64,000 nt of DNA, taken from assembly GCF_039654945.1 (NCBI RefSeq), contig NW_027361671.1, positions 26,226,001-26,290,000 on the forward strand, written 5' to 3'. Below, piece by piece: positions 7,352 to 53,054 of the stretch (its first letter is position 1; each line of letters starts with the position of its first letter). The notes beneath the pieces are model-generated. The model was given only the letters and a program-made list of their open reading frames with translations. It made no database searches and was not told the origin of the DNA. The translations under genes were made by a program, and so were the position numbers. The DNA is from Dendrobates tinctorius (taxonomy: Eukaryota).

Positions 7352-8957
7352 CAGTGGGGAAAAAAAGTATTTAGTCAGTCAGCAATAGTGCAAGTTCCAC
7401 CACTTAAAAAGATGAGAGGCGTCTGTAATTTACATCATAGGTAGACCTCAACTATGGGAGACAAACTGAGAAAAAAAAATCCAGAAAATCACATTGTCTG
7501 TTTTTTTTTCATTTTATTTGCATATTATGGTGGAAAATAAGTATTTGGTCAGAAACAAGCAATCAAGATTTCTGGCTCTCACAGACCTGTAACTTCTTCT
7601 TTAAGAGTCTCCTCTTTCCTCCACTCATTACCTGTAGTAATGGCACCTGTTTAAACTTGTTATCAGTATAAAAAGACACCTGTGCACACCCTCAAACAGT
7701 CTGACTCCAAACTCCACTATGGTGAATACCAAAGAGCTGTCAGAGGACACCAGAAACAAAATTGTAGCCCTGCACCAGGCTGGGAAGACTGAATCTGCAA
7801 TAGCCAACCAGCTTGGAGTGAAGAAATCAACTGTGGGAGCAATAATTAGAAAATGGAAGACATACAAGACCACTGATAATCTCCCTCGATCTGGTGCTCC
7901 ACGCAAAATCCCACCCCGTGGGGTCAGAATGATCACAAGAACGGTGAGCAAAAATCCCAGAACCACGCGGGGGGACCTAGTGAATGAACTGCAGAGAGCT
8001 GGGACCAATGTAACAAGGCCTACCATAAGTAACACACTACGCCACCATGGACTCAGATCCTGCAGTGCCAGACGTGTCCCACTGCTTAAACCTGTACATG
8101 TCCGGGCCTGTCTGAAGTTTGCTAGAGAGCATTTGGATGATCCAGAGGAGTTTTGGGAGAATGTCCTATGGTCTGATGAAACCAAACTGGAACTGTTTGG
8201 TAGAAACACAACTTGTCGTGTTTGGAGAAAAAAGAATACTGAGTTGCATCCATCAAACACCATACTTACTGTAAAGCATGGTGGTGGAAACATCATGCTT
8301 TGGGGCTGTTTCTCTGCAAAGGGGACAGGACGACTGATCCGGGTACATGAAAGAATGAATGGGGCCATGTATCGTGAGATTTTGAGTGCAAACCTCCTTC
8401 CATCAGCAAGGGCATTGATGATGAAACGTGGCTGGGTCTTTCAACATGACAATGATCCAAAGCACACCGCCAGGGCAATGAAGGAGTGGCTTCGTAAGAA
8501 GCATTTCAAGGTCCTGGAGTGGCCTAGCCAGTCTCCAGATCTCAACCCTATAGAAAACCTTTGGAGGGAGTTGAAAGTCCGTGTTGCCAAGCGAAAAGCC
8601 AAAAACATCACTGCTCTAGAGGAGATCTGCATGGAGGAATGGGCCAACATACCAACAACAGTGTGTGGCAACCTTGTGAAGACTTACAGAAAACGTTTGA
8701 CCTCTGTCATTGCCAACAAAGGATATATCACAAAGTATTGAGATGAAATTTTGTTTCTGACCAAATACTTATTTTCCACCATAATATGCAAATAAAATGA
8801 AAAAAAAACAGACAATGTGATTTTCTGGATTTTTTTTCCTCAGTTTGTCTCCCATAGTTGAGGTCTACCTATGATGTAAATTACAGACGCCTCTCATCTT
8901 TTTAAGTGGTGGAACTTGCACTATTGCTGACTGACTAAATACTTTTTTTCCCCACTG
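7352..8957 (+). mobile_element. Full-length Tc1 transposon with IR/DR-type TIRs
   Basis: 207-bp TIRs at 7352-7558 and 8751-8957 differing at about one position; TA on both sides; single uninterrupted transposase ORF. Confidence 0.97.
7719..8741 (+). CDS. Tc1 transposase, DD34E, 340 aa, uninterrupted
   Basis: Paired-like HTH N-terminus, GAPRK linker, [30 protein letters not shown]; 34 residues between the second D and E. Confidence 0.95.
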
Positions 8958-15254: not shown

Positions 15255-18200
15255 TTAATGGGGGGCCACTGGACCCCCAAGTTTCTCAGGGTATCTGGCA
15301 TGAAAAGCCCGCACCATTCGATCAGCGTGCACCGAACTGGCCGGAACCCATGACCGATCCTCAACGGAATATCCCTTCCAATGAATAAGGTACTGAAGTC
15401 TCCGGCGCACCCACCGTGAATCAATGATGCGCCCTACCTCGTACTCCAGTTGACCCTCTACCAACACTGGTGGAGCCACAGATGAGGGATCTTCTCTAAC
15501 TGTCCCCGCAGGTTTTAATAGGGACCTGTGGAAGACGTTAGATATTTTGAAGGAGGTGGGCAACTGTAATCAGTATGCCACCGGGTGGATCACCTCTACA
15601 ATCTTGTATGGTCCAATAAATTTTGGGCCCAACTTCATAGAGGGTATTTTAAGTTTGATGTTACGGGTGGACAACCAGACTTTTTCCCCCACTGTTAACG
15701 CAGGACCCAACCCCCTCCTCCTGTCCGCAAAATGTTTGTACTTCTTCTGAGCTTTGGGGATGTTCCCCTGCACCTCCCTCCAGAGGGTTTTTAACTGTTG
15801 TACCATCCCCTCGGCACCAGGGCAATCCGAATCCATACGGGAAAATTCCCCAAACTGCGGAACAAACCCATAATTGACCTGAAAGGGAGACTTTCCGGTA
15901 GACTGATTAATACGACAGTTGAATGCAAATTCTGCCATGGGTAATACCTCACACCAGTCTTCCTGTCTGGAGGAGGCCAGGCATCTCAGAATCTGCTCCA
16001 ACGACTGGTTGGTGCGATCAGTCTGTCCATTAGATTCCCGGTGATAGGCAGAGGAGAATGACAAAGAGACCCACAACTTAATACAAAACGCTCTCCAAAA
16101 CCTGGCCACAAATTGCACACACCTGTCCGACACCACGTTCACGGGCACTCCATGCAATCGAACAATGTGCTGTATAAACAAGCGGGCCAAGGTTTAAGCA
16201 GATGGTAAGGCAGGTAATGGCACAAAGTGGGCTTGCTTAGAAAATCTATCAACCACTACCCATACCACTGAGTTGCCCTTGGAAGATGGAAGATTAGTGA
16301 TAAAGTCCATGGACAGGTGTGTCCATGCTTTATCCGGAATTGGCAAAGGCACCAATTCCCCGGCCGGCCAGACCTGAGAGCTTTTAGAGCACTCGCACAC
16401 CCCACAAGTATTTACAAACCTTTTTATATCAGTATCCATAGAGGGCCACCAAAAAACCCCTAGCTACTGCCCCCCGGGTAGCTGCAATACCTGGGTGTGC
16501 ACTTAACACAGAATCATGAAATTCTTGAAGGAGTGTGAGACGGAATTGTTCGGATACAAAAAATTTACCTGGGGGTTTATTCCTGGGAGCTTGTGCTTGT
16601 GCTTCCAGAATCTCTCTCTGTAACTCAGAGGAGATTTTGGCTACAACCACTCCCGGTTGAAGAATGGAGGAAGGAGGTTCTGGAGGGGACACAGAATCAA
16701 AACTTCGGGATAAGGCATCCACCTTTACATTTTTAGACCCTGGTCGGAACGTGATGGTAAAATGAAATCGAGAAAAAAAAATTGCCCACTGAGCCTGTCT
16801 GGGGGTCAATCTCTTAGCTGACTCGATATAGGCCAGGTTTTTATCATCAGTGATGACCGTAATGGGATGAGCGGCCCCCTCCAAAAAATGCCTCCATTCT
16901 TCGATGGCCAATTTAACCGCTAACAATTCCCTGTTACCGACATCATAGTTTCTCTCAGCCGAAGAGAACTTCTTAGAGAAAAAGGCACAGGGTTTGAGGT
17001 TAGTCAGGGTAGAGGGGCCCTGTGACAATACTGCCCCCACCCCCACCTCCGAAGCGTCGACCTTGACGATAAAAGGTCTTGACAAATCAGGTTGTACGAA
17101 CACAGGGGCTGTGGTAAAACACTTCTTTAATGTAAGGAAGGAATTTTTTGTGGCCACGGACCAATTTTTTACATCTGCCCCTTTAAGAGTGAGGTCCGTC
17201 AAGGGTTTCACCACCTGCGAGAACCTTTTAATGAACTTCCTATAATAATTAGCGAAGCCCAGAAATCGCTGCAACCCCTTCAGGTCATGAGGCTGCACTC
17301 AATCGGTAATGGCCTGAACCTTCCCTGGATCCACGCGGAATCGCTCCCCAGATACAATTACACCCATAAAAGACAGTTCTTGCATAAAAAATGAGCACTT
17401 CTCCAGCTTAGCATACAAATGGTTCTCCAGAAATCTCATAAGAACCGTACGTAAATGGTGTAAGTGTGACTGACTGTCCTCAGAGTATATCAAGATGTCA
17501 TCCAAGTAGATGACTACATAACGCCCAATCAAGTCAGAAAAAACAACATTAATGAAGTTCTGAAAAACAGCAGGAGCGTTAGTGAGGCCGAAGGGCATAA
17601 CCAGGTTTTCAAACAGCCCCTCAGTTGTCAGGAACGCTGTTTTCCATTCGTTCCCCTCCCGAATCCTTATAAGGTTATAAGCCCCTCGTAGATCAAGCTT
17701 AGAAAACGGGAGAGGGAACGTGTTCTTAACAGTAATTTTGTTCATTTCCCGAAAGTCGAGGCACGGTCGCAACCCACCATCTTTTTTCTTTACAAAGAAA
17801 AACCCCGCTGCCATGGGTGAGACCGAGGGCCGAATATGCCCCTTGCGAAGGCTCTCTTTGATGTACTCTTTCATAGCTTGGCTCTCAGGCCCGGACAAAT
17901 TAAACAAACCAGCCTTGGGTAATTTGGCTCCAGGTACTAAATCGATAGCACAATCAAATGGTCTATGTGGTGGGAGCGCCTCAGCCTCACTTTCAGAAAA
18001 CACTTCTTCAAAGTCTCTCAGGTACTCCGGAATACCCTCCAGACCGACAGACGACACGGATACAAATCTTATCGGATTGACAAAAGGAACGGGGTTACAA
18101 CACATACCATTATCATTACATCCCCATCGGATGATCTCCCCCTTCACCCAATCAATGAGAGGATTGTGGCGTTGCAACCAGGGCATCCCCAATACCAGTC

Positions 18201-18540
18201 CTGCAGGCAGATTATTCATCATGAAACAACATAACTTTTCCACATGAGTAGAACCCATTTTCATAGAAAAAACTTCAGACATAAAGCAAATTCCATCCCG
18301 TATAAGAGGGGATGAATCCACAGCCAAAATTTTAACAGGGTCTTTTAACCTGACTGTCCCTATCTTATTAAGAGTCCCAACTTGGGCATCAATCAGATTA
18401 ATGGAGGAACCACAGTCAACAAAGGCGGTGGTCATAACAGGACCGCCAGCAAGTTCCAATTCAACCTGGAGCACCATCTTTGTATGTGAGAAAAAATGTA
18501 CCTGGGAGTCTGGACAACCTCCTCGATTGTTGCCCAGACT
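15255..18540 (-). pseudogene. Gypsy pol (protease, RT, RNase H, integrase, chromodomain), disrupted
   Basis: AFVDCGS protease; YLDDILIYS RT; VDASEVGVGAVL and ELLAVK RNase H; SMDFIT, VVSDR, ESNGQTDRTN integrase; YEVGRIIDSR...YLIHWKGY...SWVP chromodomain. Apparent in-frame deletion between FPLP and FSKLDL in RT. Confidence 0.93.
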
Positions 18541-19432
18541 CAGTCGTTTCTCTAATGGTTTCTCTGAAGAAGGGCAGGAGGGGCAATTCCTTTTCCAATG
18601 TCCAGAGGCTCCACAGTAAAAGCATAGTAGGTTGTCTCTACGGTGCCTTCTCTCTTTCTCCTTAACCGAGACTGACCCAACCACCAAGGGCTCAGATACA
18701 GGTGCAGTGTCATACAATTTGGGGTACAAGGGAGACTCTTGTTGCATCATTCCTCTAGCACGGAGTCTCCAGTCCATACGGACCGCCTGCATCATGGCAT
18801 CCTCCAGGGTATCAGGGGGAGGATGTAATGCCAGAGCGTCATGCATACGGTCAGACAGGACCCTGCGGATCAAACCCCTCAGGGCGTCGTCATTCTAGGA
18901 TATTTCGGTGGTCCAACGTCTAAACTCTGAGCAGAACCATTCAGCAGAGTGCCTCCCCTGTGTCTCTCATCACCATATCCTCTGCCAGACGCGCTCTATC
19001 AGGCTCATCATAAATGTGCCCCAGAGCCTCAAAGAACAAATTCACAGACATACGTTCAGGAGCAGAGGAAGAGAGAGAGAAAGCCTATGCCTGTGGAGCC
19101 CCCCGAAGTAGGGAAATGACGACCCCCACCCTCTGGAACTGATCCCTGGAGGAGCGGGGCCTCAGAGAAAAAAAAAGCTTGCATCCTTCTCTGAACGACC
19201 TGAACTCCCTTTTATCCCCTGAGAAAGGGTCTGGCAATTTGACCGGAGATTCGGGGGATGCCAATGACACATCTCTATCCCCAGCACTAGGAGACCCTGC
19301 AGCGACAGCCCCCTGCACAGTATCCACCAACTGTTGCTGGGTATGGGCCATCGTGCGCTGTTCCACATTAAGTTTGTGGAATATTTGGGTCAGGTGCTTG
19401 ACCTGATCAGCCAAAGCTTGTATGGGATCCAT
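18540..19432 (-). pseudogene. Gypsy gag (capsid plus CCHC knuckle), disrupted
   Basis: MDPIQALADQV...KLPDPFSGD...VISLLRG and CFYCGASGHWKRNC in ORFs 19085-19432 and 17299-18873. Confidence 0.9.
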
Positions 19433-29713: not shown

Positions 29714-30630
29714 ATGGAGAAGAAAATGTATGATCTTTCAAAACCCCATCATGTTGAGGAAGTGGGAAACATGCTGTTAGATGATGATGATGATGCAGAC
29801 CCCACAATGAATGAGGATTTTGAAGAAAGTGAGATTGATTCTCATGATGAGGTGGAAGTCTGTGAACTAAATTCTGAAACAGAGCAAGATGGTGACAGTG
29901 ATGAGGCGGAAGAAGATATAGAATCTTATTATATGGGAAAAGATAAAAAACCAAATGGAACAAGAATCCACCCATAAAAAAACGTATGGAACCTCATAAC
30001 ATTATCACTCACCTTCCCGCAGTTATGGGAACAGCACGTAATGCAAAAAATGCAGCTGAATGCTGGAATACTTTTTTCACAGATGACATTCTGGACTCTA
30101 TTGTCATATACACTAATCAATATATAGACAATATAAAGCACAAGTTCATCTGTGACAGAATCCTGAAGCCCACGGATGAAATCGAACTGCGTGAATTTTT
30201 TGGATTATTGTACCTTGCAGGAGCTTATAGGGCAAATCGGCAAAGTTTGGAGGAACTTTGGGGTATAGAAAGTGATGGAATTGAAAAATTTAGCCTTGTT
30301 ATGTCTCTAAAAAGATTCAAGGTTCTAATTCGTTGCCTTCGGTTTGATGACAGAACTGATGACAAAAAATTGGCCCATGAACTAATGCTTGGAGAGCTAC
30401 GCAGGAGAAGTATGAAAACCATCGGTATCCCCTCTGGCCTTCAAGTTAGGCTCAAAAGATTCCGCCCAGATATTGATACTGAAAATCCAACACCTGTACC
30501 ACCTCCCAAAAGAAGGAGATGCACCACCTGCACCATGGAAAGCGGGAACAGAAGGCTTTCTAATTATGAATGTCTCAAATGTCGTCATGCAATCTGCCTG
30601 ACACATGCAAAAATGTATTGCAATTCTTGA
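29714..30630 (+). pseudogene. piggyBac transposase with catalytic core deleted (element ~29525-30990)
   Basis: Acidic N-terminus; FFTDDILDSIVIYTN, ELREFFGLLYLAG and MSLKRFKVLIRCLRFDD joined directly to the C-terminal Cys-rich domain RRRCTTC...CLKCRHAICLTH. Frameshift near 29950. Confidence 0.87.
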
Positions 30631-41393: not shown

Positions 41394-41868
41394 TGTAGCA
41401 AAGATAGGTAGGACAGGGTTAAATTTTAACTCTGCAGGGTTTGATTAGAGGAACCTGCATAGCTTTTTATTAGAAGCAGGAAGTAGGCTCACTTGGTGTG
41501 CAGTGTGCTGGGGAACTAAGCAGAGTGTAGATTCTGCTGGGAGCTGCAGACTACACTGAGCCAGGTGAACAGCCAGTATTGCAGCACAGAAGAGAGACTG
41601 AGGTTTGTGTCTTGGAGGAGAGGTGAAAATACCTCTTGGTGCTGATCTCTCTAGCAGAACTTGAGAAACAACTGGACATTTATCTGAATGGGTGAGTCCG
41701 CATGTGCCTGTGTATGGATTATTTATTTTGTTCCTTTATACCAGAGAAAGGCTGTTTACCGTTCTGCTAAAAGTTTATGCACTTTAATAAATCTCCTTGT
41801 TTGACCCAGAAAATGTGTGCCTGTGTGAATTCTAGCTGCCTAAAAGCGAGTAAACCCTTAGATCTACA
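41394..41868 (+). mobile_element. Putative solo LTR
   Basis: tgtagc...atctaca with AATAAA near 41786, interrupting the minisatellite; 4-bp flanks only partly match (cagc/tatc). Confidence 0.5.
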
Positions 41869-42295
41869 TATCAGCATTCAAATATTACTACACATAAAAG
41901 AATAGCTACATGTAAACATGCAAATATTTATACACTTAAAAGAATAGCTACATATAAACATACAAATATTTCTACAGATACAAGAATAGCTATGTAAACA
42001 TACAAATATTTCTAATTTGTCTTAAATGAAAAAACACAAAAAGAATTGTCCTAAAGCCAAATTGGATATAATTCCACACCAAACATAAAAGAGGGTGGAC
42101 AAAAGTATTGGCACTGTTCGAAAAATCATGTGATGCTTGCTTCTCTAATTTGTGCAATTATAATTAACAGCACCTGTAACTTACCTGTGGCACCTAACAG
42201 GTGTTGGCAATAACTAAATCACACTTGCAGCCAGTTGACATGGATTAAAGTTGACTCAACCTCTCTCCTGTGTCCTTGTGTGTACCACATTGAGC

Positions 42296-43329
<1,034 letters not shown>

Positions 43330-43505
43330 GCTGAGGGTGCCAATACTTTTGTCTGGCCCATTTTGGGAGTGTTGTGTGAAATGATCAATGTTTTGCTTTT
43401 TGCTTCATTCTCTTTTGTGTTTTTTCATTTAAGACAAATTAAATGAAGATAATAATACCAAAGAATTTGTGATTGCAATCATTTTCAGGAAGAAACTGAG
43501 TATTA

Positions 43506-44817
43506 CACTGGTCAACAGCATTTTTGGTGCCAAAGATATTTCATCGAATTTAGGGTATTTTTGGGGTGCTGATTCTGAATATGTCATCAGTTTTGCCAGA
43601 TTGGCTCAAGTTTTTGAGATTTTTGGTATCTTATTTATAGCACTTGTTGGTAAATGCGACGCATCATCTCATTAATTTCTTTGGATTAGTACTTGAACTG
43701 AGCAGTTCTCAATATAGTTTTGTGTTAATTAGTGTTCTAAAAGTTTGTTCATAGCTTGATTTTTGCACTAACTTTATGTTGTTGTCTGTTTTCCAGTGAA
43801 AAGCATGAACTCATCAAGAAGAAGTTGTCTTAACGATCCAGACTCATTCTGTTACATTTGTGGTGAATACACACTGCCAAAACATAGAAGAAACATAACA
43901 GACTTCGTAAAAAAAGTGTATTTTGCCTATTTTGGGGTTATGCTTGGGGACCAAGACAAGTTTTGGGCACCACACATAGTGTGCAAAGCATGTATCGAAT
44001 TATTACGAAAATGGAGCAAAGGACAAAGAAAAAGCTTCAAATTTGGTGTTCCAATGGTGTGGAGAGAGCCAAAAAATCATCATGATGACTGTTATTTATG
44101 GTAAACACAGGTACAGGCACATCTTCACAATGAGGGACAGGCCTTCTTGCAGATTCCATGTTACTCCCATTTTCGTTTCTTATGCTTATTGAATCCTTGC
44201 ACTTGCACTGCACAGAAATAACAGTCATCATGATGATTTTTTGGCTCTCTCCACACCATTGGAACACCAAATTTGAAGCTTTTTCTTTGTCCTTTGCTCC
44301 ATTTTCGTAATAATTCGATACATGCTTTGCACACTATGTGTGGTGCCCAAAACTTGTCTTGGTCCCCAAGCATAACCCCAAAATAGGCAAAATACACTTT
44401 TTTTACGAAGTGTGTTATGTTTCTTCTATGTTTTGGCAGTGTATATTCACCACAAATGTAACAGAATGAGTCTGGATCGTTAAGACAACTTCTTCATGAT
44501 GAGTTCATGCTTTTCACTGGAAAACAGACAACAACATAAAGTTAGTGCAAAAATCAAGCTATGAACAAACTTTTAGAACACTAATTAACACAAAACTATA
44601 TTGAGAACTGCTCAGTTCAAGTACTAATCCAAAGAAATTAATGAGATGATGCGTCGCATTTACCAACAAGTGCTATAAATAAGATACCAAAAATCTCAAA
44701 AACTTGAGCCAATCTGGCAAAACTGATGACATATTCAGAATCAGCACCCCAAAAATACCCCAAATTCATTAAAATATTTTGGACACCAGAAAAAAAATTT
44801 TTTTTCGTTGACCTGTG
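43506..44817. mobile_element. Chapaev3 (CMC superfamily) fold-back derivative
   Basis: CAC...GTG termini (cactggtcaac / gttgacctgtg); TTA TSD (43503-43505, 44818-44820); two inverted copies of an N-terminal Cys-rich region (FCYICGE, GDQDKFWAPHIVC, WREPKNHHDDCYFC). Confidence 0.88.
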
Positions 44818-47800
44818 TTATCTGACAGAATTGCAGGGGTGTCAATACTTTTGGCCACAACTGTACACGTACAAATATTACTACATATAAAGGATAGCTG
44901 CCTATAAACATATGTCTACACATATAAGGATAGCTACATGTAAACATATAAATTTTACTACACATATAAGGATAGCTACATGTGAACATACAAATATTAC
45001 TACACATAAACACAAAAGGATATCTACATGTAAACACAAATCTTACTACACAAAAACTACATTGAAACATAAAAGTAAAACTATATATACACACATTGCT
45101 ACACATAAAAACAAAAGCTCTACTTGTAATGCTGCATAAAAGCAAAGTAGTACAATAGCTTATTGACATAGGAAACCTTACCATTTTGACAGGCATATAG
45201 TGTAAGACGTATTACAGTGCTAGTGGGCGTATGAAGGGCTCTCCTAACAGATTTGTGGGATAACAAAGCATGACAATACATGGCATGATGTCAATCATAA
45301 TGTAGTCCTGTACACATAAGTTTTCTCCTTACAGTATTATTTATTATAATAACTCAATTTTGTGCCTATTTTACTCTTGGAGGACCCATTATAAGTTTAA
45401 AAAATATATATATTTTTAAGCAATCTGATGTCATGGCTAGTTGGCTACAATCAAAAAACACTGCCATCTTACTGAAATACATTTCTGGTACCTAAACTTT
45501 ACAAGAATTCAACTGGAATTGACTATGTACCATAAACTATTGAATACATTCAAATAGTAATAGTAGCATTTTTAGCTCAATGGTATTTGGTATAGGCATT
45601 AAACAGAGCAGATAATCAGACAAGATCTCATCTACTACTACATCATGTGTCCAAGTTAGCTGTCCCACACACAACCCTTATCATTTACCAACATATGTTG
45701 CATGTGAATATGTCATAAGATTCTCAATGTGCAATATACACTTTTATGCATTTACATTTTAGGATATAATAAAATTACATTATGATTTAATGCATATGGA
45801 AAAGCAAAACGACCACCTCTTTGATGACACAGTAAGCACACACAAATAATACATAAACTGGCAGTGAAAGTTCCAATAAAATAAGATCATAGACTGTACC
45901 TGAGCAGACAGCAGTGGCAAGGTGCCTATATTTTTCAGCTTGCAGATGTCTAACATAATGCTGCAATAGTGGATAACACATCTTCAGACTGACACTACAC
46001 CTCCACATTCATGGCTAGCCTATCCTGATCTGTACACATCCCCAGCTTCATGTTCAGATATCACTTGCCTCTGCATTCAAATTGCAGGCAGTAATGGAGA
46101 GGGATGGGACGTGACGGAGAGGCACTGTTGCTCCACAATATGGGAAGGAAATGATTTACCGGTATGGTGGCAGGCTCTTATATTGAAACACAAATCTGCA
46201 CCTAGTATTACTACATTTTTGTATTCCGTAAGTTTATCACATTGCAAAGAACACAGCATTTCCTTCAGCTCAAGGCAGGCAAACAGTACCATACAGTATG
46301 CAGAAGCTGGCTAAATGTTGTTAAAGGGTCGGAGCGAGCACAGATGACTAGCAAGACTTACCATAATATCCTTAACTTTCTAGATCTTGTATTCAGTTTC
46401 TCAAGGCAAATACGTGGAACGTAAGTCTTGGATAGGTGTCCCAGAATGTATCCATCTTATTTCACCTCCTTTCTACTAATGCTGGTTAATCTGAGAGAGG
46501 GGGTGATGGTATATAGGTGGGGCTTAGGCTGTTCAATTGTTCTTTCCGCAACACAGAGCGGGTGAGCTACAGCCAACCATGTCATAAAAGGCACCCACCA
46601 TAACCAATCCGAGACCACATATGAAGGACTGCATATCTATGAACGCTTATATCTCCTCTTTTCGGTCTCCTGTAAAACTAAACCCTTATCTGCTCAGTCA
46701 GATCAGATTTTGACCACACTGTTTTGACAACTTGTAGAAAATTATGCAAAAACAATACATATGTGCCTTCTTTTGTTTTCATTTCAAAAGATATTCGATG
46801 AAAGACTGATAAAGTGTGTGCATTCTTGAGCAGGGCTTGAGTAGAAGGAGAGTATAACACAAAGAAATTGAAAAGTAACAAAAATAAAACTGTGTGCTCA
46901 GGACTCCCACCAGGAATTTCAGGGCCCCACACTGGCAACATTTTTGGGCTCTCTTGAGACTCTATCCAGGCTCCAACCCAGCTCCACCTCCACCCCTTCC
47001 ACAGAACATTGCCCCTGCCCACTCGGAAAAACTCCATCATGTCCTCACCAATCAAACTAACAGTTTCCATCGAACACCAGATCACATACATCAGCTTCTG
47101 TTTTTGCCAAAAAGATTTTTTTAAGCCACCACAACAAGCTAGAATCTTTTGGCCAGGTTCTACTCTACTCTAACCTATTAACCTTTTTTTAAAATGTCCA
47201 TTACTCTTTTTAGGCATATGCTTATTTTTTTGTAATGGAATGAGTCACATACATTTTTTAAAGTAATCGAACCCAGATTGTGATAGTTTTTTTAGAATCT
47301 GTACTTCTGATTGCAGATTATTGTATTATGTTTCCCTTATGTTTATAGGAGCTGCTCTCTTGCCTGTTTGGTGATATGGACATTGGATATATGCATGTAT
47401 ATATATCATAAGTCATTATAGGGGAGTCTATTTTCTTGGGTACAGAAAGTACTCAGACCCCTTTAAAATTTTCACTCTGTTTCATTGCAGTCATTTGGTA
47501 AATTCAAAAAAGTTCATTTATTTTCTCATTAATGTACACTCTGAACCCCATCTTGACTGAAAAAAACAGAAATGTAGAATTTTTTGCAAATCTATTAAAA
47601 AAGAAAAACTGAAATATTACATGGTCATAAGTATTCAGACCCTTTGCTCAGTATTGAGCAGAAGCACCCTTTTGAGCTAGTACAGCCATGAGTCTTCTTA
47701 GGAATGATGCAACAAGTTTTTCTCTAGCAACCTTCCGCGACAGGATAGGAGGTTGTCTCAACGCCCTAATGGGGGACAGGAAGCACAAAGAGGTTAAAAG

Positions 47801-48205: not shown

Positions 48206-49895
48206 TTGGATCCGTGCCTGCTCGGACCCCGGGAGGGGGAGGGGGAAAGTGAGTATGAGCAAAGCACTGAGGGCATGGTCGGTTCTTCCCACCCTGCATC
48301 TGCGGAGCCCAGTGCTGCCCCAGCCACAGTAAGTGTGCTATTGGGGTGGGTCCTAGTGGTGCAATTTTGGGTAGGGGTCATCAAAATGCTTCTCTCCTTT
48401 CTTGTAGGGAGAAAAGTCTGCCTATAAAAGCACCAATACCACCAGTAAACCAGCTAAATGTGCCATATGTAGTACAAAGCTTCCCTCAAGCTGGGGGAAA
48501 AAATTATGTCAGGCATGCACGGACGGAGTGGTCAGGTCTGAGCACCCCTCATTGATTGAGGAAATCCGCAGCCTGGTCACACAACAGGTTCAGTGTCAAG
48601 TATAGCGTGGCACCACCACAAGGTGCACAAGTAGGTTACCCAGACCGAAGTGAATAATGAAAATAACTTGGCACTCAACTGAATGATCCTTTGCACATGA
48701 AGTTTTTATTTTTCTATATATTTTAAAAACTTCATGTGCAAAGGATCATTCATTTGAGTGCCAAGTTATTTTCATTATACACAACAGGTTCAGACCTCCC
48801 TAGCCGCCTTGTCTCCCCCTCCACCTCCTCCATTTCTACCAGCCGTGGGTTCACCTTCCACAAAAAAGCGAAGGCTGCAGTTAGAGGAATCGGACTCTGA
48901 GTCAGAGCATTCCTATAATTCAGGATCTGAAAAATGGGAGGAACCAACAACCTCTAAATCAGCCGAGGCCAGAAGATACCTCTTTTCCTCAGAATATGTG
49001 GAGGAGCTGATCAGTGCGGTGCGTGCCTCCATGGGACTAGAGGATGAACCAGTCCCTGAGTCGGCACAAGACAAAATGTTTGGAGGGTTCAAAGGGCCCA
49101 GACTGGCAGGGTTTCCAGTACATAGGAGCATAACGGATATGATCTCCCAAGAATGGGAATACCCAGAGAAATGCTACTCGGCTCCTTTGGAGCTCAGGCA
49201 TAGATTCTCCCTGGAGGGAGATGCATTTAAATGGGACATACCAAAAGTTGATGTCCAGGTAGCAAGAGTAGTGAAGAAAATAGTCCTTCCATTTGACGAT
49301 GTATCCCAGCTTAGGGATCCAATGGACCGCGAAGCTGAAAGCCTCTTAAGAAAGTCCTGGGAAACCTCTGCCTTTGCCTTAAAGTCAGGAATTGCTTTCA
49401 CATGTGTTTCTAGATCCCTCTTCCAGTGGATAGAGGAGCTAGAGAATCATATTGCTCGGGGGACATCAAGGGGCGAACATCTTGGATCCCTCCCCATACT
49501 ACAGAGAGCTACAGGCTTCTTGGCGGACGCATCCATGGAGATGATCCGCACCTCTGCCAGGTCTATGGTACAATCTAATTCTGCCAGGAGAGCCCTCTGG
49601 CATAAAACATGGAGCGGGGATGTTACCTCCAAGGTTAAGCTCTGCTCTATCCCCTTCATGGGTGAACACGTCTTTGGCCCAGCCCTGGATGAAATCCTTG
49701 AGAAGTCCACAGATAGAAAGAAAGCGCTCCCTGAGCAGAAGGCCCCAAGGAGGCAGTTTTATCGAGCCCCCCCAGAACCGGTCATCCCAGCTGGAAGGGA
49801 AGGGAAAGACAGAAAGATGGAGCTATGCTAAGGGGAAAGGCAAGAACATCTTGGTCCCCCAGCAGCAGCAGCAACACCAGCAGGAAAAACAATGA
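48206..49895 (+). pseudogene. DIRS ORF1 (gag-like), apparently spliced, interrupted by a 185-bp insertion
   Basis: CAIC...LCQAC motif at ~48458-48520, then ORF 48758-49831 (WDIPKVDVQVARV, LRDPMDR, ARRALWHKTW, IPFMGEHVFGPALDEIL). Start codon uncertain. Confidence 0.8.
48594..48778. mobile_element. Short hairpin insertion, Penelope-like
   Basis: 15-bp TSD acacaacaggttcag (48579-48593, 48779-48793); 55-bp inverted arms 48654-48708 / 48724-48778. Confidence 0.7.
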
Positions 49896-49899
49896 CTCG

Positions 49900-52023
49900 G
49901 TCCCGGTGGGGGGGGGGGAAGGCTTAAGAATTTTTTCCATTCTTGGCAGTTGATCTCCAACAGCCCCTGGGTCCTCAGTGTGATCAAGGAGAGCTTTCTT
50001 CTAGAATTCGAATCCACCCCCCCGCGGTGCCTGAGAGTCACCTCCCTACCATCTTGAGAGGCCTTGGCAACGCTAGAGTCTGGCATGCAGCTCCTTCTGC
50101 AATCAGGTGCCATTTCTCGAGTCCCTGTGGAAGAGCAAGGAAAGGGCTATTATTCCAAGCTGTTCTTAGTAAAGAAGCCCACAGGAGAGGCGAGAATAAT
50201 AATAAACTTGAAAAATCTCAACCGCCACATTGCATACCGCAAATTCAAAATGGAGTCGATGAGGACTGCCATCCCCTTGATAAGGCCTCTTTCCTTCATG
50301 GCGACCATAGATCTGATGGATGCCTATTTTCACATCCCTATATATCATGCTCACAGGAAATATCTATGGTTCGCGATCCGTCAGGGTCCCGAGATCAGGC
50401 ATTATCAGTACAACGTGCTTCCCTTTGGGATATCCTCTGCCCCACGAGTGTTTTCAAAAGTTATGGCGGAAGCTGTGTCCCACATCAGAAGTCGAGGTAT
50501 ATGTGTGGTGCCCTACCTGGACGACCTATTGATGATAGGAACCTCCTACCAGACCCTGAAAAATCAGGTGACTCAAACTCTGGACATTCTTCAATCCCTG
50601 GGGTGGATCCCGAATATAAAAAAAAATAAAAAAATCGCAGATCCAGCCCTCTTAGGAAATAAGATTTTTGGGAGTCCTCTTAGACTCAAGAAGACAGATG
50701 TCCTTCCCGCCGGAGGATCATTAGGTGGCTATAGAATCAAAGATCTTGAGTTTCAGAAAACAGAGGTCCCCGACCCTCCAGTCAGCTATGTCAATACTGG
50801 GGCCGATGATGTCCTGTATCCAGTCAGTACCGTGGGCGCAGGCCCATTCCAGAATCCTCCAGTCCCATATGTTAGGAAATTGGAACAGACACCACAATTG
50901 CCTGAACAAGAGTCCTGACCCCAGAAAGGGTAAAGGCTTCACTAGCCTGGTGGCTGGACCGCCAAAACCTGCGCAAAGGGATCAGCTGGTCCCAGGTCCC
51001 CTTGATCACGGTAACATCAGATGCCAGCAAAAAAGGCTGGGGAGCTGTAGTATCCCAGCTGCCATTCCAGGGGTTATGGAGTCGAGAAGTGAGTACGACA
51101 TCTTCAAATTTCAGAGAGCTCAAGGCAGTGGAAGAAGCTCTCCTGGCCGCAAGACACCTGGTCCAGGGTCATCATATCAAAGTCGACTCCGACAACATAA
51201 CGACAGTGGCACACCTCAGGCACCAGGGTGGCACGAGGTCGAACAGCCTACAAAACCTTTCGGGACGAATATTTTCTTGGGCCGAAAGGCACCTCCTTTC
51301 ACTTACAGCAGTGCACCTAAAGGGGACCTCCAATCTTCAGGCAGACTTCCTAAGGCCTGTTTTACACATCCATTTTTTTGCATCCATCAGAGTGTGAAAA
51401 AACAGATCCGTTTCCGTTTTGCCGCAAACGGATGCAAAAGGATCCTTTTTTTGACGGATCAGCGGTAGCCGCTAATGGAAGTCTATGGGACTAAACGGAT
51501 CCTCCAAAAAAATGGCGGATCCGTTTTTTAACGGAAACCAACGGATTTTGACGGATTTACAAAAACGGAAGTGTGATCCAGGCCTAAGCAGGAGATGTAT
51601 CCAGCCTGGCGTGTGGAGTCTGAACGGAAGAATCTTTCAGAAACTAGTGAGCAGGTGGGGCCTTCCGGAGGTGGATCTGCTAGCATCAAGCAGAAATGCT
51701 CAGGTGGGGAAATACTTCCCCCTGAACCCCAGGGACAGATCTCTGGGAGTAGATGCCTTGTGGGAGTTCTGTCTGGCGTATGTCTCCCCCCAGTTCCAAT
51801 CCTTGCTGCAACCCTGAGAAAGATCCGAGAAGATCAAACTCAAACCATCCTGGTGGCTCCGCTATGGCCAAAGAAGAGCTGGTATTCTTTAATCACGGAA
51901 CTCCAGGTAGATGGGCCACTCCTCCTACCCCTGGAAGATGACCTCCTCCTGCAGGGTCCCCTATGCCACCCAAACCTTCGGGGGATGAAGTTAGCGGCAT
52001 GGTTACTGAGGCCCAAATCTTGA
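49900..52023 (+). pseudogene. DIRS RT, RNase H and methyltransferase-like domain, frameshifted
   Basis: YSKLFLVKKP, IDLMDAYFHIPI, LPFGISSAPRVFSK, PYLDDLL; SDASKKGWGA, RELKAV, SDNITTVAHL; WGLPEVDLLAS, ILVAPLWPKKSWY. Confidence 0.92.
51354..51584. mobile_element. PIF/Harbinger-type MITE in the DIRS RNase H
   Basis: taa|ggcctgttttacac ... gtgtgatccaggcc|taa; removal restores ADFLSR. Confidence 0.87.
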
Positions 52024-53054
52024 GGGCCAAGGGTCTATCACAGGCGGTAGTCGCGACCCTTCAGAAGGCAAGAAAGCCGGTCACCAATGCCATATACAAC
52101 AAAGTATGGAAGAATCATTTTCATCATGGTGTCTGCCGAACCCTCCTGACCCAGCAAATCCTAACATCTCCCGTATACTAGACTTCTTGCAGAATGGGCT
52201 CGAGTTAGGCCTAAAGCCTAGCACCCTGAAGGGACAGGTCTCGGCCTCCATGTTCCATGTTCAACTGCGAATTAGCCAGCCACCGCTGGATAAGAAGATT
52301 CGTGACATCAGCTACTAGGCTACACCCAAAAAAACAAATTGACATTCCTTCATGGGACTTGAATGTGGTGCTTAAGGGGCTCACTCAATCCCCCTTTGAG
52401 CCCCTGTCGTCTTGTACTTCTCAACTTCTTGCCTGTAAAATAGCCTTCCTTGTAGCAATAACCTCGGCAAGACGTATAGGAGAGCTCCAGGCTCTTTCAA
52501 TCAGAGAGCCCTACCTAACTATTAGAGATGATTTCATAGTCCTCTCTCTTGATCCATCCTTTCTCCCAAAGATTGTGTCTGACTTTCATAGGTCACAGGA
52601 GATAATTCTTCCCTCGTTTTGCCAGAACCCAACGAATCCTAAAGAGGAGGTATTTCATACGCTTGATGTAAGGAGCATAGTTCTTCACTACCTGAGTTTT
52701 ACGAAATCCTACAGAATCGACCACAATCTGTTTATCCATTCGTCGGGTGCAAACAAAGGAAAGAAGGTGGCAAAGAACACCATTGCCAACTGGATCAAGA
52801 AAGCCATCTCTGAAGCATATCTAGCGCAGAACATCATATCCCCTATGGGGATCAGGGCTCATTCAACACGATCTACCTCTGCATCATGGGCTGAGAGGGC
52901 AGGCGCATCCTCAGAGCAGATCTGCAAAGCGGCAACTTGGTCCTCGTTACATACCTTTACCAAACATTATCGGTTGGACCTTGTGTCCAATAGGGATTTA
53001 GTCTTTGGCCAAAAAGTTCTTCAGGCCATTGTTCCCACCCTAAGTGCAGTATAG
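52000..53054 (+). pseudogene. DIRS tyrosine recombinase (catalytic part open, 52257-53054)
   Basis: AITSARRIGELQAL (R), AHSTR (HxxR), ATW, FTKHY (Y); N-terminal part frameshifted. Confidence 0.92.

Follow-up and report, generated by a model that had tools for sequence, protein, structure and literature searches.

The element at positions 43506–44817 of the analysed window (the whole 64,000-nucleotide stretch of Dendrobates tinctorius DNA) is very probably an undiverged member of a non-autonomous fold-back family with many copies, one that derives from a poison-frog Chapaev3 (CMC superfamily) transposon, was founded by a strand switch and has been moved in trans. The element is 1312 bp long, has CAC...GTG termini and is flanked by a TTA target-site duplication. 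The unit transposes as a whole, making TWA duplications as it does so, and it cannot encode a transposase.

Sequence comparison resolved two inverted arms of 545 bp that differ at exactly three positions (43817/44496, 43870/44443 and 43901/44412). An inverted-repeat search of the element returned a longer repeat (580 nt, 98%), because the outer ends (47 bp on the left, 57 bp on the right) are also related to each other, differing by substitutions and indels. The features are listed below with the basis for each in brackets; L001 is a whole related element and the P numbers denote related proteins, both described later.

43503–43505, no strand: left copy of the TTA target-site duplication (A at 43502; empty-site contigs join 43502 to 44818).
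43506–43552, minus strand: 3′-type terminus of 47 bp, beginning CACTGGTCAAC and lying outside the perfect arms (diverged from the other end, with indels; aligns with the 3′ end of L001).
43553–44097, plus strand: left arm, the inverted secondary copy of the parent 5′ region, with subterminal sequence, leader, ttttccag (43789–43796) and codons 1–97 from the ATG at 43805 (repeat search, arm comparison and open reading frames).
44098–44215, minus strand: spacer (hairpin loop) of 118 bp, with approximately codons 98–137 of the transposase frame but, at 44161/44162, lacking 5 bp that the parent type has (alignment to P0181, P0202, P0236 and P0253; TAGGA in run X16 and in one contig of run X6).
44216–44760, minus strand: right arm, the original parent 5′ region, with subterminal sequence, leader and codons 1–97 from the ATG at 44508, carrying a stop at codon 5 (44496) and a D>H change (44412) (the parent-type contig of X16 is colinear with the right arm and spacer).
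44761–44817, minus strand: 5′-type terminus of 57 bp, reading CACAGGTCAAC and then an A8/T8 tract on the minus strand (an A-run/T-run also marks the 5′ end of L001, with which this terminus aligns).
44818–44820, no strand: right copy of the TTA target-site duplication (T at 44821; empty-site contigs).
42251–44863, plus strand: host Tc1-like copy, with transposase reading-frame pieces at 42251–42811 and 42880–43329 and its right end near 44863 (HTH_SB and HTH_Tnp_Tc3_2 domains; very high flank depth; empty paralogues).

This anatomy agrees with the initial annotation, which had described 545-bp inverted arms with three differences around a 118-bp spacer, each arm holding the leader, ttttccag and about 97 codons; the ttttccag of the left arm is mirrored at 44517–44524 in the right arm, as the ATG at 43805 is mirrored at 44508.

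The fold-back lies ~46 bp inside the right end of the host Tc1. Among the Logan contigs that make up the sequencing runs, other Tc1 copies pass straight from 43502 to 44818 (17 contigs in DNA run X1 and 28 in DNA run X6), skipping 1315 bp, which is the 1312-bp element plus one TTA. These empty paralogous sites read GTA-TTA-TCTG, and loose contig ends at the insertion point read GTATTA/TCTGACAG and also ...GAGTATTA/TCTGACAGAATTGCAGG. The Tc1 contigs without the element are paralogous empty sites and define its boundaries and its TTA duplication with single-base precision. Within the window we found no second Tc1 right end that could serve as an empty site, and the left end of the host Tc1 is too diverged to do so. 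The 64-kb window likewise holds no other family copy; the subterminal motif occurs in it only twice, both times in the element. A 42-bp AT-rich minisatellite is present on both sides of the host Tc1 (41864–42014 and 44862–45057), from which it follows that the Tc1 entered the array before the fold-back entered the Tc1. The host Tc1 has departed from the consensus of its family at several sites (43283, 43371 and 43472), and this divergence fits the same nesting order of minisatellite, then Tc1, then fold-back.

The 64-kb window is transposon-rich throughout. An uninterrupted 340-residue Tc1/Sleeping-Beauty-type transposase frame with HTH_SB, Tc3 HTH and DDE_3 domains is present at 7719–8741 (plus strand) and may belong to an intact Tc1. 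Gypsy-like pol sequence (RVT_1, RNase H and integrase zinc finger) occupies 16429–18873 (minus strand), and a fragment of a piggyBac-type transposase (DDE_Tnp_1_7) lies at 29986–30630 (plus strand). A DIRS-like unit with RVT_1 and a weak tyrosine-recombinase match spans 48758–53054 (plus strand); its first reading frame matches LAP2alpha.

The number of copies was estimated from contig depths, which when summed are not copy numbers and so give the order of magnitude only. In X6, arm contigs without differences reached depths of 13,905 (43582–43816) and 13,593 (43939–44070), while the contig across the spacer–arm junction (44162–44244) had a depth of 6,934. A 2:1 ratio of arm to spacer is expected of a palindrome whose k-mers are counted on both strands. 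Set against a depth of 3.81 for a unique right-flank contig (2,049 nt, identical to the window over 261 nt), the junction depth of 6,934 gives ~1,800 copies, which we claim only as ~10^3. Solving arm depth as 2F+P and spacer depth as F+P, for fold-back and parent-type copies respectively, puts the parent type at a few per cent of copies at most, in agreement with the depth of 358 for the one X6 contig of parent type. As a check of scale, the Tc1 depth of ~10^6 would equal ~0.4 Gb of Tc1; a published account gives 0.4 Gb of Tc1/mariner in a poison frog (PMC6278860). These depths suggest that the family numbers ~10^3 and that almost every copy is a fold-back. The initial annotation had described a young element, which is not a single oddity but one copy of a large family. 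That the unit had moved in one piece, as the TTA duplication within a Tc1 had first implied, is supported by the empty sites, the ~10^3 copies and the 2:1 arm-to-spacer depth.

No alternative letter reaches a share of 10% or more anywhere within the element in X6, which means that this copy equals the family consensus. The right-arm states at 44496 (including the codon-5 stop) and 44412 have depths above 10^4 in X6 (organism C) and of 0–357 in X1 (organism A), so that at least two of the three arm mismatches mark a subfamily and not the age of the copy. The two frog taxa represented by X1 and X6 seem to carry different fold-back subfamilies, and the abundance of the family relative to Tc1 is about ten times higher in X1. 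Single X1 contigs carry internal arm deletions of 113 bp (43956 to 44070) and 267 bp (44471 to 44739), and resemble additional deletion derivatives of the fold-back family.

Palindromes of this size are a recognised class of assembly artefact, arising when a chimeric long read (through a missed adapter or a fold-back read) creates a false inverted duplication. We rejected this origin as extremely improbable here. The spacer is asymmetric, the outer ends are distinct and the target-site duplication is precise; of the words sampled from the element, 81–93% recur in independent short-read contigs from several studies, in runs that bear four organism labels; and the 2:1 ratio of arm to spacer is seen at depths of ~10^4. 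None of the contigs listed spans the fold-back junction at 44097/44098 with at least 31 letters on each side, and support for this junction beyond the assembly is indirect, coming from the depth ratio and from the share of words found under the four labels.

Chapaev3 transposons are characterised by CAC...GTG termini and by a 3-bp TWA duplication between A and T (PMC4079192). The element begins with CACTGGTCAAC (43506–43516) and ends with GTTGACCTGTG (44807–44817), and its target site reads A (43502), TTA (43503–43505), element, TTA (44818–44820), T (44821). The polyA RNA library X16 holds a second locus, in which TAA follows A: its record 17 places the 3′-type family tip (window 43505–43615) beside a different flank (...GGTGATAA/CACTGG), the TAA duplication after A marking another insertion site, and the tip differs from the window at 43544, 43558 and 43559. 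In Anolis, Chapaev3 has the inverted-repeat head CACWGSCCAAC and autonomous reading frames of 485–561 residues (PMC3014272); the frog tips resemble this head, and the proteins of the relatives, at 560–568 residues, fit the autonomous length.

The arms encode a cysteine-rich N-terminal domain of ~97 codons. A search of 1.84 billion proteins with this domain found 2,999 relatives (E ≤ 0.001), of which the named ones belong to beetles, a mantis shrimp, a spider and a copepod. Among proteins that share the domain at 49–72% identity, P0181, P0236 and the second reading frame of L001 (6412–7512) carry CCF(L/I)C, PPLH and H-x4-H, which correspond to the motifs C(2)C, LH and H(4)H that characterise the group. 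Pfam and PDB sequence searches with the N-terminal domain gave only sub-threshold zinc-finger-like matches, which leaves it outside any curated family, and the Pfam search of the element found no THAP domain. The supplements of PMC4079192 contain none of the Chapaev3 protein or inverted-repeat motifs that we sought, and CMC elements, hairpins, MITEs and piRNA all go unmentioned in the poison-frog genome paper. The ends, the target rule and an N-terminal domain homologous to that of DDE proteins in which C(2)C, LH and H(4)H are present support a Chapaev3 (CMC superfamily) type for the element, as had been proposed from the first inspection of the sequence.

Four whole related elements (L001–L004; ENA assemblies, 2.4–3.4 kb, N-terminal domain 64–72% identical) show what the ends of such transposons normally look like. 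Their inverted ends are imperfect (76–86%), measure 73–125 nt, and in no case extend into the coding region. In alignment A1 the left end of the frog element groups with the 3′ end of L001 and the right end with its 5′ end, the latter two both having an A-run/T-run after CACAG.TCAAC, so the suggestion that the outer ends are true left and right termini (3′-type and 5′-type) holds. L001 (5621–8124) and L002–L004 all have asymmetric ends with the A-run/T-run at the 5′ end only, and a block conserved in both of their ends, TTGGCTC(A/T)AGTTTTTGAGAT, is a candidate transposase-binding site. As in the frog element, ttttcag lies just upstream of the ATG in L001.

Long terminal inverted repeats native to the autonomous family, as in Foldback and Galileo, could in principle account for the 545-bp arms, and the outer ~100 nt of the relatives do resemble an inverted repeat. 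We nevertheless give this reading a negligible probability and rejected it. The arms include the start codon and 97 codons, a parent-type contig exits the palindrome at 44098 with its reading frame continuing, and all four whole relatives have short inverted ends. Because the natural ends measure only 73–125 nt in four of four cases, far below 545 bp, the long arms are secondary; the length of the natural inverted ends was the comparison that the initial annotation had named as a test of its claim.

The parent-type contig comes from X16. It is 739 nt long and colinear with the window from 44727 down to 44098, through the right arm and spacer, and then continues for 104 nt in sequence that is not left arm. 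Over 635 nt it differs from the window at eight positions, so the arms are ~99% identical to the parent 5′ UTR and codons 1–97. Beyond 44098, thirty letters translated by eye stay in frame (...VPVFTMLPDLPPPDD). Behind 44161 the contig has five extra bases, TAGGA, which restore the frame and give KRKWEYPNMESARRPVPH, the YPN..SA.RPVPH block of the relatives. At 44496 and 44412 it has the left-arm states, and hence no stop codon. The TAGGA form also occurs in DNA run X6, in one contig with a depth of 358. A parent-type sequence with an open frame across the arm–spacer region thus exists and appears in a polyA RNA library.

In the window copy the frame runs on from the right arm through the spacer on the minus strand and, when read with XX at the break, aligns with P0181, P0202, P0236 and P0253 to the last spacer codons. 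The initial annotation was right that the spacer extends the minus-strand transposase, and this continuation is now seen in the alignment; a frameshift interrupts the extension, five bases of the parent type being absent. The stop at codon 5 of the right arm and the spacer frameshift, two defects absent from that annotation, make this copy coding-dead. Exact-protein look-ups of three reading frames of the element in public assemblies returned no match. The known coding span in the element copy is approximately the first 137 codons, and the catalytic domain of the frog parent is not among the sequences recovered.

Read on the minus strand, the element would consist of the parent 5′ end, leader and ~137 codons (right arm and spacer), an inverted copy of the first ~590 nt (left arm), and the true 3′-terminal 47 bp of the parent. 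The founder was most likely made during excision-gap repair or replication: a nascent strand may have been extended inward from the 5′ end and, after a jump to the complementary strand, outward again. The inner junction at 44097/44098 has no clear microhomology. We infer that the strand was resolved by annealing where the two terminal inverted repeats are naturally homologous (~100 nt), and the genuine 3′ tip would thereby have been kept; the change from 3′-type to 5′-type sequence falls at ~43545–43557, inside this natural end-to-end homology. The initial annotation had placed a template switch at a shared subterminal motif, and the switch point does lie inside the natural terminal homology; it is from the end points alone that the mechanism is deduced. 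With both tips kept and the subterminal regions symmetric, the element would have been mobilised in trans, presumably cut and pasted by parent-type transposase from the rare copies that encode it.

Founding by a strand switch and mobilisation in trans are compatible with, and could be refined by, an advantage in cis, in which the fold-back form owes its spread to being a better substrate for transposition (for instance because transposase-binding sites of the 5′ subterminal region stand on both sides, or because the ends are brought together by snapping back) and RNA plays no role. We hold this to be possible, if on balance doubtful. Fold-backs outnumber the parent type by roughly 20–50 to 1 in X6 (6,934 versus 358), but non-autonomous elements commonly exceed their parents in number regardless of shape. 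The long inverted repeats of Galileo carry multiple transposase-binding sites, according to PMC3688188 and the discussion in PMC3573991, whereas the first 305 bp of the frog arm contain no short direct or inverted subterminal repeats.

Taken as RNA, the whole unit gives one predicted hairpin of −1043 kcal/mol, and for any read-through transcript the predicted fold is a near-perfect hairpin of 545 bp over the transposase 5′ UTR and codons 1–97. We take the hairpin to be a by-product of the structure, not a demonstrated function. It is conceivable that hairpin RNA from the fold-backs gives rise to small RNAs (endo-siRNAs or piRNA precursors) or to some other repression of the autonomous Chapaev3, in the manner of Mu killer in maize, so that the family would act as a mobile brake on its parent; we regard this as unlikely. 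The predicted 545-bp duplex would match the parent 5′ UTR and codons 1–97 at ~99% identity, frog embryos produce small RNAs from intronic transposon remnants (PMC3875865), and Mu killer provides a precedent (PMC3440606). Against these points, the ~10^3 copies needed continued transposase while hairpin copies built up, which means that the hairpin brought no rapid shutdown of the family and that any silencing would have been weak or late. Vertebrate cells outside oocytes, moreover, handle long double-stranded RNA poorly.

Run X11, annotated as ‘RNA?’, holds both arms and spacer and has eight differences of its own, all of them T>C and all in the arms (44044, 44092, 44093, 44359, 44360, 44661, 44676 and 44680), a pattern expected from A-to-I editing of double-stranded RNA. 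These eight are absent from DNA runs X1 and X6, and from X16 at all five of the sites that its contig covers. Some form adjacent pairs, two contigs at 44630–44710 carry seven changes in 81 nt, and none of the eight sites has a 5′ G on the edited strand. The set looks like A-to-I hyper-editing, an unproven reading given that the run type is guessed and the strand label of a contig is arbitrary within a palindrome. As evidence for silencing it is tempered by X11 being only guessed to be RNA and coming from a different individual from every DNA run, and the clear polyA run X16 has the parent-type contig through 44098 and no fold-back junction. The boldest version, a mobile vertebrate Mu killer amplified ~10^3-fold whose copies in transcribed DNA would yield double-stranded RNA of the transposase 5′ end that is A-to-I edited, diced or both and dampens the Chapaev3 parent, is in our judgement slightly less likely again. 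If true, fold-back derivatives would be a general, self-generated route by which bursts of DNA transposons end.

Whatever the fate of its RNA, the family is a clean and datable example of a cut-and-paste transposon yielding a fold-back that outcompetes its parent, with both break points visible and parent-type sequence at hand. Near-perfect arms from the 5′ end of a transposase gene, in ~10^3 copies, amount to a natural experiment on whether long hairpin RNA restrains DNA transposons in the vertebrate germline, and the family also bears on how genomes tolerate abundant double-stranded RNA. Palindromes of such size break short-read assemblies, and intronic copies would put 545-bp hairpins and a splice-acceptor-like site into pre-mRNAs.

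The closest known elements are the Chapaev3 MITEs (Merrow, Garfield and Conan, and Chapaev3-1N1/1N2 of Anolis), with which the frog element shares CAC...GTG termini, TWA between A and T, and an inverted-repeat head near CACWGSCCAAC (PMC4079192, PMC3014272). Common to both, too, are relatives of ~560 residues with C(2)C, LH and H(4)H, and non-autonomous derivatives that exceed their parents in number (PMC4079192, PMC3014272). The non-autonomous Chapaev3 elements described are simple internal-deletion MITEs of less than 600 bp (PMC4079192), whereas the frog element is a 1.3-kb fold-back whose arms contain the transposase start and 97 codons. MITEs are defined as generally shorter than 600 bp, non-coding, homogeneous and high-copy; the frog element is high-copy and homogeneous, but at 1312 bp and derived from coding sequence it falls outside this definition.

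Galileo (P superfamily) copies with extended inverted repeats, and Foldback-like elements of Drosophila, have likewise recruited internal single-copy sequence in inverted orientation beside the other inverted repeat and kept their mobility (PMC3573991). The frog element has the same type of extension, with arms of 545 bp compared with natural ends of 73–125 nt. Galileo differs in that it belongs to the P/THAP superfamily, whereas the termini, target-site duplication and N-terminal domain of the frog element are of Chapaev3 type; in that its recruited sequence is non-coding spacer; and in that its extended copies are not reduced to the palindrome alone.

In architecture the frog element matches Mu killer, an inverted partial duplication of the 5′ part of a transposase gene and the adjacent terminal inverted repeat (PMC3440606). 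Mu killer is a single locus, transcribed from a flanking gene, for which siRNAs and heritable silencing of MuDR with a quick shutdown have been demonstrated; the frog fold-back, in contrast, is itself mobile and present in ~10^3 copies, and a silencing role for it is hypothetical.

Another fold-back is Tc7 of C. elegans, which has Tc1 ends and is moved by the Tc1 transposase. Tc7 and the frog element are both non-autonomous, and the frog element is probably, like Tc7, moved in trans by a canonical cut-and-paste transposase; the arms of Tc7 are not known to come from transposase coding sequence. The fold-back lifestyle itself is known, and what we file as new is a fold-back non-autonomous Chapaev3 family, notable for its coding-sequence arms and its high copy number in a vertebrate.
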